A DNA stretch of 64,000 nt from assembly GCF_002571385.2 (NCBI RefSeq), contig NW_019217790.1, forward strand, positions 1,003,242 to 1,067,241. Reading direction: 5' to 3'. The position numbers and the translations under genes were made by a program. The DNA is from Stylophora pistillata (Eukaryota). The notes under the pieces are model-generated. The model ran no database searches. It saw only the letters and a program-made list of their open reading frames with translations, and was not told where the DNA came from. Of this stretch, positions 17,401 through 21,302 are shown in pieces; positions within the stretch are counted from its first letter, which is position 1, and each line of letters begins with the position of its first letter.

Positions 17401-20400
17401 ATGGAAACTATGCAGGACAATGAAGCAATTATAATCAGGGTCAGTTATAAATCTCTTTCATTCTAATCAGAACCGTAGTAAGAGTGTGCGCATTAATTTC
17501 GTCTCTGTGAATGTATTTATTCTAGGGAGCTGAAAGATTTTCTTCCTATTCGGGATACGGAAGAACCTTCAAGTTCACTGGCGACTTTAAGGACGAATCA
17601 GAGGTAATTTTGGCGACTATCATTTGCTAAGCGAACGGTTGGACAAAATAAAGACCATCTACTGAGAACCGTAAATACTGGCTCTTTGCCACAAGCACTA
17701 CGGTGTAATAGATGTGCTTGAACGCTTGTCTTTTAGTTAAAAAAAGGTCATTTTGGCAGATTATGATCAGAAAGATGAAATGCGTGAAGAGCGTTTGATT
17801 TCCTTGCATAATTTTGTGGATTAACAGAGACCAAGGTATTTTACCATAACAGAAATGTGTAAGTTTACAAAACTGCCAACTGTTAAGAATTTAGAAACTT
17901 TTTTATACTCAAGTTGTAGCCGTGAAATTGACCGGGCATCAAACATTTTCTTGGTTATAATATTCCGAAAATCATAGTTTTTGTTTTTTTTTTTACTCGG
18001 AAAGAAGTGTCATTTCGTCATCATTTCTTTTAAAGCACGATGAAGACGGTGATTTTCAGACCACAGTGGTAGCAATTGATGCAAAACGGTTCAAGAACAT
18101 GCCAAGAGAAAGTCAGTATGAAGAATCTGCGTTGCTAAGAGAACTAAACAAGGCTTTGGTAGGATTTTACAACCCTGAAGTCGGTACCCAGATCCTCCGC
18201 ACTCCATCAGGTTGTTATCTATGTGCGCGTTCTTTCGTTGTTCAATTTTTACTTTCATTTTCGCTCAGACGGCCCTTGAAGATCGACTGATTTAAATCCT
18301 TTCTCAGTATAATCACAACAGCCAATCGTAGTGAGGGAGAATGCGTGAAAGGCTCACGTGACTAAGTCCTGATTGGTTTAAGTTTTGCATCTAATTGGTT
18401 GAAAAGAGCGAAACGTGCAACGGTGAGCAGAGTTCTGGGCTTCATTGTCTGGGAAGTGAATTTGCACATGTTCCCGACACTCAAGCAATTCAACGATTTG
18501 ACTTTTCTTTCATGAATCCTGCTGTAGAATATTAAGGCGCTACTCAAGTTGCAATTCTCTTACAACATTCATTCTCATTCGTCGCAATATTCACTAACTC
18601 AACGAATTTAGGCGAATTACTTTCTATTTACACTACTATACTTTTTGTTCGTTGCTGTTCGCCACGAACCTTTTTTTTGCCAGTTGTCGATGTAATTTTT
18701 TTCTTTCTTCGTAGACGAAGAAAGTGACATGTCTTTAGCTGAAAGCGAAGACTTTGCTTCATCGGAAGAACTCGTGCTCTCTTCGGAAGATCCTGTGGTA
18801 TCATCGGAAGAAGCCGAAACTCATAAAAGGCAGCCCTTGCCAAAAGACGGTAAAGTTTTGGAAATTCCCGAGTTTAGTCATAACCTTGTCAATCTTGCGT
18901 TATCGCAAGCTATGGACGAAGTAAACAATAACTGCTTCTTAGAAGACTTTGTTGACGGTGATATTGTGACTAATGTGATGAAAAAGTCTTTGATCGAAGT
19001 CTTCGGTGGTACTCCCGAAAAAGCTCGGAGATACTCGGAAAACCTTTTGAGTCCTTCGCTGCTCCCGAAGTGCTTGTCGCTTAACGCGAGTGGTTCAAAT
19101 TCTCCGACAGTTCCCGGTACACCTCCGTCCTCTCCTGCAATGTATGATCCGAGCATTTCTGAACAGACATCTTTAGACTCGCAATTACGGTTGAACACTT
19201 CTCTAAGGTTAAATAGAAGTTCAAGTAAAGATGGATCTCTCTCTTTTTCCGTGAAGAGCTTTGCTGACTCACTTTCCAACTCTCTAATGTCATGTGTGCA
19301 GTTGACGTCATCCCTCGCCACTGCCATAGCAACCGTGGCGACTTCACCAGGACAAGTGGTGTCGGATACCAAAGAAGCATTTTGCGAGAGCCCCAAGAAC
19401 ATAAGGTCCCCCGTGAAGAATGGAGATAGTATTTTGTCATTTTTGAATCGGAAAGTTCCTCAATCGGAGATTTCGCCGAATAAGACTTTCACTGATGGTT
19501 TTCACTTTACCGAATTTGTGGAAGACTTATCATCATTAGTGAAATCAACAAAGCTACAAAGGTTCAAGGTCAAAGATGACGCGGAAAGCTGTCTGATGTC
19601 TTCAGGCGCTAGACAAAACCTTATGGAGGAATTCAATCAATTTGGGGATGAATCCAACGCAAAGGTGTACGAGCAGTTTGCAACAAAATTATCAAGCTTC
19701 ACTGTCGATTTGGCCCTTACCTCTTTATTTAGATCACCATTTGAAAGGGACGAACTTGAGAAAGACGTTGGAGAAATTCTCACCGAACAGAGTACAGATC
19801 CTGACTCGATGGATCCATCTGATGAGCAAATTGGTAACGGTTCTCAGTCCCCATGGAGCGCTGCGCAAATCAAAGGTAGTCGGGAGTTTCTTAACATCCT
19901 TAATGGTCACGCAAATGCTCTGTTGGTAGATACGATACAGTCTGCTCTGGCTGAGGCAGCAGAATATTGTGTTGAGAGAACAACTTGTGATTATTTTTCT
20001 TCTCCCGTCGATGAAGATTATGAACCATTGAAAGAAAAAGAAGGGCAAGGAGAGATGGAAAATAAGACGGCAGATGCGAGTAGCTCGTCAGAATCTTCCG
20101 AAGGGGAGCAAAGTGACTACACTGAGGAAGGTAACCTGACTTTAGGGAATTCTCTGAATGACCTCGCCTCTGAATTCCCACAGGCTGTGTTTGAAATAGC
20201 ACAGAAACTTTCCCAGAATATCATTTATGATGGAGTGGCGCAAGCAGTAGTAGTGGTGATGAAAGAAAAATCCAAGGAAATGACGACAGAGGTTCAACTG
20301 GAAACTCCCAAGGAAGTCACAGAGGTTGATACTAAGAAAAAGGCAGAAGAATCGCTCTCCTTCTTTGTTGAGGATGGAACCGACAAGCAGACTTTGAATG

Positions 20401-21302
20401 GATTTTCGGAAGATCTGAGCTGTTTCACGATACGTGGAGCTGTTAAGCTTGCTGGAGCACTCCTTGAGACGCCCAACGGGGAACCCCGGGTACGCCCCGT
20501 TGCAACCGGGAACTGGGGATGTGGGGTGTTTAAGGGGGACCCGGAATTGAAGGCTGTTATTCAGTGGGCTGCCGCGTCAGCAGCTGGGTGTCCTGTGGTA
20601 GTTTACCATTCTTTTGGTGACCAGAGAATGTCACATGTGAGTTTCCTTCCAAGGATTTTAGTATTTTCTTATAGATCATTTCAGATTATAGAAAGGATTT
20701 TGTATTCATCGGCGAGTTTTCTGCTTTACCCGCACAATGTTTTCCCAATGTTTTTCCAACGTGTTATTTGTAATTCGGTAGCAGCGCAACAGGCGCTTGA
20801 TAGAAAGATCTGGTTTTAGAATCCCTCTGGGAAGTTCGAATTTTTTTTACTTTCTTCCACGCTAGTGAAACCTAACGACATATTTCGACGACGATATTTG
20901 TTCATCCGACGACCGAGCCAAACATTTAATCATTCATTACTACGATCATGTTCTGTCAGACTATTGCCTTTTTAAGTTGATTACCTTTCTTTTGCCTTTT
21001 AGTTGGTAGGACCCTTGTCTGTTTGCGCACTTTGATAAATTTTCCTTTCCATCCTTGATTAGCTAATGTCGTTGCCAATTCGTTTTATCGTTTGACACGT
21101 ATTTCTCCCTTTTATTTCTCTTTCAAAGTTCCTCAAGGCACTCGTTTGTTTACACTCACGTAACTGGAAAATCTCTGACGTCATCCAAGGAGTTCTTCGA
21201 TTCTACAAAGCTATCCAGGTAGGAAGGGAGGAAACTGTTGGAAAAAATTCGTCATTGCTGTCATTTCTCTGCCAAATGCGTCAACCATCTATCAAAAAAT
21301 GA
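14496..21302 (+). CDS. PARG: Poly(ADP-ribose) glycohydrolase (PARG)-family protein with a ~600-aa insertion, 1082 aa
   Basis: Phase-consistent exons 14496-14880, 15862-15997, 16100-16211, 16504-16623, 17039-17095, 17350-17439, 17526-17603, 18036-18210, 18715-20636, 21129-21302 (3249 nt). Motifs: [67 protein letters not shown] (catalytic GGG...QEE), YSGYG Tyr loop, [44 protein letters not shown]. May be a paralog rather than the ortholog. Confidence 0.9.

Follow-up and report, generated by a model that had tools for sequence, protein, structure and literature searches.

Organization of the divided PARG gene

The DNA analysed here, referred to below as the window, is a stretch of 64,000 nt from the stony coral Stylophora pistillata (RefSeq assembly GCF_002571385.2, contig NW_019217790.1, positions 1,003,242 to 1,067,241; G000:C7:1003242-1067241 within the 397.6 Mb assembly), and all positions are given in its coordinates. 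On the forward strand at 14496-21302 it carries a ten-exon gene for poly(ADP-ribose) glycohydrolase (PARG), and within this otherwise intact PARG lies an insert that is a real, expressed and conserved array of amphipathic helices. Exact matching of protein to reading frames placed all 1082 residues of the S. pistillata protein XP_022791276.1 / PFX33982.1 (P0065) on the gene, with every matched exon segment identical. The gene model is not new to the public databases, where it stands without a functional name: XP_022791276.1 is entered as 'uncharacterized protein LOC111330640', and the UniRef name is PARG.

Exon 1 (14496-14880, boundaries approximate) is an open reading frame (ORF) that contains the start codon and the N-terminal region and corresponds exactly to P0065 residues 1-128. 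Exons 2-7 (15861-17603; singly at about 15861-15998, 16101-16214, 16507-16626, 17042-17095, 17350-17439 and 17526-17603), placed by exact protein-to-frame matches and by the Pfam models PARG_cat_N and PARG_cat_C on P0065, code for the PARG helical domain and the early macrodomain, including the catalytic signature GGG-X8-QEE. Exon 8 (18034-18210), at whose first position the RNA contigs begin, continues the macrodomain as far as the LRELNKA helix, with which the canonical PARG sequence stops ahead of the insert. A 504-nt GT..AG intron separates it from exon 9 (18715-20636), which is 1922 nt long and encodes an insert of about 590 residues followed by the resumption of the macrodomain at 20499-20636; this exon is supported by an open frame that extends from 18729 to 20819, with an in-frame run of 640 codons through the exon, as well as by polyA RNA contigs and by 54-58 homologues. 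Exon 10 (21129-21302), also an exact match and joined to exon 9 in RNA, supplies the C-terminal macrodomain helices and the stop codon.

The assignment to PARG is secure at the level of Pfam, with P0065 scoring 84.5 bits against PF20811 and 251.3 bits, in two stretches, against PF05028, both above the cut-offs. In the PARG_cat_C profile, exon 8 covers positions 117-157 and residues 573-638 of exon 9 cover positions 141-205, so that the model is matched on either side of the insert, while the window exons gave no other Pfam match above noise between these two stretches. Like canonical PARG (human PARG, PDB 4A0D/4B1G; PF20811 and PF05028), the coral protein has the helical N-domain, the macrodomain, GGG-X8-QEE and GNWGCG. 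The catalytic signature, of the general form GGG-X6-8-QEE, is intact and aligns with the same motif of PDB 8adj_A, and the diphosphate-binding loop VATGNWGCG (general form (A/V)TGNWGCG), aligned to human PARG in the PDB, is intact at 20499-20525; every catalytic motif tested is kept, as the original prediction had it, and this is apparently an active enzyme. Unlike canonical PARG, however, the coral gene has 607 residues where the solved enzyme has a loop of eight. Residues 73-372 of P0065 align with positions 159-459 of the 8adj_A chain and residues 980-1052 with positions 468-539, and the 607 residues stand between the LRELNKA helix and VATGNWGCG, which bears out the proposal that some 600 in-frame residues, nearly all from a single 1922-nt exon, separate motifs that are normally close together.

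Expression of the insert

An exon of this length, even if nothing else, might raise the suspicion that the insert is an artefact of intron retention or mis-assembly, or non-coding sequence that splicing would normally remove. The RNA data argue strongly otherwise. The two GT..AG joints that flank exon 9, 18210/18715 and 20636/21129, both occur in polyA RNA-seq contigs (four runs, three studies), and individual contigs of 2668 nt extend from exon 8 across the complete exon 9 into exon 10. The polyA RNA-seq contigs contained no joint inside exon 9, although contigs can hide rare isoforms that lack the insert. A protein 99% identical and with the same junctions (P0001) is encoded by an intronless 3.5-kb Logan contig, and the insert is single-copy in the Stylophora genome. 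The exons of the window served as separate queries, and comparisons at full length were based on the database proteins P0065, P0001 and P0002. With an open frame of 640 codons, carriage of exon 9 whole in polyA RNA from three studies, conservation of the insert from corals to anemones, and its inclusion in NCBI's own gene model, an artefactual origin is extremely improbable, and we have rejected it.

Distribution of insert-bearing PARGs

A word-indexed search found 54 clusters that cover the insert at 34-99% identity, and phmmer, run exhaustively against 1.84 billion representatives with only the insert as query, found 14; the searches combined give 54-58 clusters of relatives, reaching down to 31-34% identity. 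PARG_cat_C is present in every match long enough to judge, and in the full-length transcripts, which encode 1024-1088 residues, the insert is always accompanied by PARG_cat_N and a split PARG_cat_C. Because Actinia tenebrosa LOC116292090 (P0062) and a Nematostella vectensis 'predicted protein' emerged in addition from a profile search, the family, as recognized by sequence similarity, has members in stony corals and sea anemones at least. Among orthologues the insert varies from about 538 to 786 residues, and its linkers vary greatly in length.

Not all members appear to have kept the enzyme. In Actinia P0062 the catalytic motifs are degenerate, with GGN..QQE for GGG..QEE and GSWSCG (IGSWSCGELGSD) for GNWGCG, and in a further anemone orthologue, P0057, they are also degenerate and the diphosphate loop carries a deletion; both keep the insert helices, and both are probably pseudo-enzymes.

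The same genome contains a separate, canonical PARG paralogue with an ordinary short loop, on another contig (G000:C6:433500-443300; L006, L007). This protein is closer to insect PARG than to the window gene; an exon segment at its short loop reads RELDK, and its post-loop helix is IQMMACATGSRD, as against IQW[AV]AASAAGCP in the insert-bearing PARGs. Given a canonical short-loop PARG elsewhere in the genome and a single copy of the insert in it, we tentatively regard the window gene as a second PARG paralogue of hexacorals, a view that forms part of the joint explanation developed below and that we hold with slightly less than even confidence.

Composition and conservation of the insert

The insert contains at least seven separate amphipathic helices, and the seven listed in the original prediction were all found where it had placed them. 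They share the core F-[AS]-x-x-L-S-x-x-hydrophobic-hydrophobic-x-x-A and are separated by disordered, acidic linkers rich in Ser and Pro. Motifs of the type first proposed occur six times, compared with 0.1 in shuffled sequences, a figure to be read in the knowledge that the motif was defined after the sequence had been seen. Conservation, measured among 24 sequences filtered to less than 85% pairwise identity, averages 0.72 for the seven helices and 0.52 for the remainder of the insert (P=0.002 by random placement), with 0.88 for the PARG tail; the helices thus behave as conserved islands among the orthologues.

The first helix, H1 (EFSHNLVNLALSQAM, 18870-18914), has a nearly invariant hydrophobic face and is modelled as a helix by AlphaFold2 (AF2) with a predicted local distance difference test score (pLDDT) of 71-82. 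H2 (DIVTNVMKKSLIEV, 18960-19001; conservation 0.78) is likewise an AF2 helix and leads directly into a conserved non-helical block at 19002-19151, which comprises PEKAR(R)YSENLL, LPKC and SGSNxPxVPGTPPSSP; its conservation is 0.76, with invariant columns K, Y, P, K, P, T, P, P, S and P, and AF2 gives it as disordered. H3 (SFADSLSNSLMSCV, 19257-19298; pLDDT 79-84) is the best conserved helix at 0.90 and is kept in anemones too. H4 (QFATKLSSFTVDLAL, 19674-19718) was delimited in the helix conservation analysis and has the anemone counterpart FASQLADSIVKSA, and H5 (HANALLVDTIQSALAEA, 19908-19958; conservation 0.67) is a DSSP helix in the low-confidence full-length model. An acidic, Ser-rich tract (SSSSESSEGEQSDY, 20070-20120) precedes H6 (EIAQKLSQNIIYDGVAQA, 20193-20246). 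The last helix, H7 (GFSEDLSCFTIRGAVKLA, 20400-20453), stands immediately before the resumption of the macrodomain, and all of these features are encoded on the forward strand. A second conserved non-helical block, TKExFxKSPKxxxSPVKNGD, is present as well, and the non-helical blocks are as conserved as the helices; they may be linear motifs with candidate basophilic and proline-directed phosphorylation sites.

An AF2 model of the N-terminal half of the insert, built from 48 sequences, shows helices at pLDDT 70-84 split by disordered stretches, with a mean pLDDT of 60.0 and a predicted template modelling score (pTM) of 0.26. This low pTM indicates that the N-terminal half has no compact fold and is better described as a set of separate predicted helices. 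The model of full-length P0065 has a mean pLDDT of 37.7, the PARG domain included, the alignment being too shallow for the PARG part; since that model is poor throughout, it is from the flexible ends of the insert that we infer closure of the macrodomain around it.

One way to read this arrangement is that the helices pack on the macrodomain as an accessory domain, a lid or substrate-recognition module that would alter how poly(ADP-ribose) reaches the active site. The insertion point adjoins the diphosphate-binding loop, H7 abuts the resuming beta-strand and is sometimes aligned by Pfam to a PARG helix (profile 141-157), and a repeated motif could form a helical repeat, all of which such a module would accommodate. 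It would accommodate less easily the pTM of 0.26 for the best conserved half and the long disordered linkers, the great variation in linker length among inserts of about 538 to 786 residues, and the retention of the helices in the Actinia orthologue despite the decay of its catalytic motifs, and we consider it improbable.

Possible relationship to A-kinase anchoring proteins

The helices were originally proposed to be of the kind found in A-kinase anchoring proteins (AKAPs), which bind regulatory subunits of protein kinase A (PKA). Binding of PKA is established for the vertebrate proteins AKAP3, AKAP4, AKAP11 and SPHKAP; psychiatric disease has been associated with AKAP11, and sperm function with AKAP3 and AKAP4. 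In its passages on AKAPs, a 2024 study reports half a PARG macrodomain at the C-terminal end of four human AKAPs, this region matching human PARG by HHsearch with 98% probability over 122 columns, and its authors write that the N-terminal PARG portion 'appears to have been lost' (PMC11377751). As described there, the AKAP_110 family (AKAP3, AKAP4, AKAP11/AKAP220 and SPHKAP; PF05716) has an extended stretch with many amphipathic helices and, after it, a C-terminal PARG half (PMC11377751). The coral protein is similar in that a long helix-rich region precedes the counterpart of this PARG remnant, here within a complete PARG. It is dissimilar in retaining the catalytic N-half and in giving no match at the Pfam threshold; homology of the helix regions is a candidate relationship.

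In the open-access literature searched, only PMC11377751 connects PARG with AKAP3/4/11/SPHKAP, and its passages on AKAPs name no invertebrate form. Searches of the accessible literature found neither a PARG interrupted in this way nor an AKAP_110 intermediate from an invertebrate.

The Pfam evidence lies below the gathering cut-offs, which are 25 bits for AKAP_110 (PF05716) and 27 bits for SmAKAP (PF15127). Residues 960-1033 of the full-length homologue P0061, just after the GNWGCG loop, match positions 608-679 of the 690 in the AKAP_110 profile with E=0.0035 and 16.2 bits, against the required 25, and the match is co-linear. Sub-threshold SmAKAP matches over H6 or H7 were obtained in 22 of 53 members, the best reaching 24.0 bits (P0016) against the cut-off of 27; in P0008, for example, residues 508-538 match profile positions 50-80. 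The protein smAKAP (C2orf88; PF15127) resembles the insert in that an amphipathic helix comes after an acidic tract, although, unlike the coral protein, it is small and membrane-anchored, with one helix and without an enzyme domain. When only the insert was compared in the ESM Atlas feature search and PARG families were left aside, the four rows obtained included an AKAP4 cluster at 0.85 (184 of 256 features) and, at 0.82, a cluster resembling AKAP11. Finally, the anemone form of H4 (FASQLADSIVKSA) has eight of 13 residues in common with the core of the RI-anchoring disruptor (RIAD) peptide, the sequence of which, YANQLADQIIKEA, is printed in PMC2652104 and PMC4526808.

A considerable body of results weighs against an AKAP relationship. 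No Pfam AKAP model was matched at its gathering cut-off. The AKAP_110 model matched only one of the eight full-length homologues, gave nothing for the window exon or P0065 at E<=10, and was absent from a six-frame search of the Stylophora genome. No AKAP protein was returned by the exhaustive phmmer search with the insert or by the insert profile search, nor did one emerge when the last 88 residues of P0007 served as query in a region search; a profile search of the PDB gave only PARG chains and no AKAP peptide. The ESM Atlas match is below 0.9, and the search repeated with the insert of P0050, an orthologue 38% identical, gave no usable match. The published motif for binding type II regulatory subunits (RII), which describes an amphipathic helix of 14-18 residues, matches once in the insert, at H1, where 0.8 matches are expected by chance. 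The periodicity of the other helices is pair-x-x-pair, but their core positions include Ser or Gly, which in several of them is not ideal for binding a docking domain. Amphipathic helices with such a periodicity are common, moreover, and can serve many partners.

Four lines thus lead towards AKAP likeness, namely the published PARG-AKAP connection, Pfam, the language model and H4, each of them weak or indirect. The original proposal is partly supported: the conserved helices stand, with the sub-threshold AKAP_110 and SmAKAP matches and one ESM search in its favour, whereas no match reached a cut-off, the RII motif occurs at the chance rate, and the ESM result did not repeat. On this balance the chances that the insert is homologous to the AKAP_110 helix region are about even, and anchoring of PKA by the insert is possible, though we judge it to be the less probable outcome.

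It is a realistic, if somewhat doubtful, prospect that the loop has undergone a lineage-specific expansion, regulatory or scaffolding in role and unrelated to AKAPs, the likeness being a convergence in composition and helix periodicity, with the helices and phosphorylatable linkers binding other partners or self-associating and so localizing or gating the enzyme. This would suit the uniformly sub-threshold AKAP-model matches, the recovery by sequence and profile searches of PARG-linked relatives only, the chance rate of the RII motif, the blank ESM replicate, and the equal conservation of non-helical blocks with Ser-Pro and Arg-x-x-Ser sites. It would require two coincidences, however: that the one vertebrate AKAP family named when the sequence was first read is the family that ends in a PARG C-half, and that the insert stands directly upstream of that very half. 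It also leaves the co-linear AKAP_110 match of P0061 unexplained.

A proposed docking scaffold and a possible origin of AKAPs

The explanation that we favour, at a little below even confidence, is that the window gene is a hexacoral PARG paralogue with an insert of docking helices, an arrangement from which the vertebrate AKAP3, AKAP4, AKAP11 and SPHKAP proteins could have arisen. The macrodomain would most probably close in its usual fold about the insert, both ends of which are flexible; the insert, placed in a surface loop just before the diphosphate-binding loop, would serve as a docking scaffold that positions the enzyme. Its helices would be of the type that binds the dimerization/docking domains of PKA regulatory subunits or of related RIIa-fold proteins. 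From an arrangement [PARG N-half]-[helix array]-[PARG C-half], loss of the N-half would yield the vertebrate [helix array]-[PARG C-half]; the coral architecture would in this way explain the PARG half of AKAPs, the insert standing exactly at the boundary. The Actinia orthologue, in which helices are kept while the catalytic motifs decay, parallels the non-catalytic vertebrate AKAPs and shows the drift that such an origin would predict.

A more specific proposal is that the hexacoral split PARG is a surviving form of the ancestor of AKAP3/4/11/SPHKAP and would still act in corals both as an active poly(ADP-ribose) glycohydrolase and as an A-kinase anchor. A PARG paralogue would first have gained a PKA-anchoring helix array inside its macrodomain loop, after which the vertebrate lineage would have lost the catalytic N-half, while the catalytic residues began to decay in some anemones. 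This full version we think rather unlikely.

The appeal of an origin from a split PARG is that half a macrodomain is hard to derive alone, while a full PARG with an insert upstream of that half provides a testable route to the AKAPs, a medically relevant family whose origin would be addressed; the coral protein may be a living intermediate that explains the half PARG domain at the end of the vertebrate proteins. If it proves to be an active enzyme as well as a PKA anchor, it would be the first known case of a direct connection between an ADP-ribose-removing enzyme and cyclic AMP (cAMP) signalling, and cAMP/PKA signalling would be physically coupled to poly(ADP-ribose) removal in corals. Even if it does not bind PKA, it illustrates that the macrodomain tolerates an insertion of 600 residues beside its active site.

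The docking domains of the coral's own PKA were located, that of the type I regulatory subunit (RI) at G000:C357:20558-20662 and that of RII at G000:C147:458209-458304. The RII-type subunit (L013, G000:C147:458209-459291) lies mostly on one exon, and its inhibitor site, RRRAVAAEAYNP, has Ala at the phosphorylation position, where vertebrate RII has Ser. Four further genes with RIIa domains (L009, L011, L012 and L014) encode docking domains like those of ropporin, SPA17 or CABYR, and their products are alternative partners for helices of the AKAP type. A sequence QW-x-AAS at the C-terminus of AKAP4 resembles IQW[AV]AAS of the insert-bearing PARGs; the literature gave no match for QWIAAS, QWVAAS or QWAAAS, and the resemblance is not used as evidence.

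Other features of the window

Upstream of the PARG gene, an ORF on the forward strand at 9467-10411 has EF-hand-like sequence and is unrelated to the PARG finding. It is separated from the PARG gene by a run of N at about 12220-12960, which is either an assembly gap or a masked stretch. Some 500 nt beyond the PARG stop codon, at 21796-22236, a 17-bp tandem repeat (GCAAAGCTGCACGGTGT) is present in 26 copies with 87% matches, and gives rise to long spurious ORFs on both strands.

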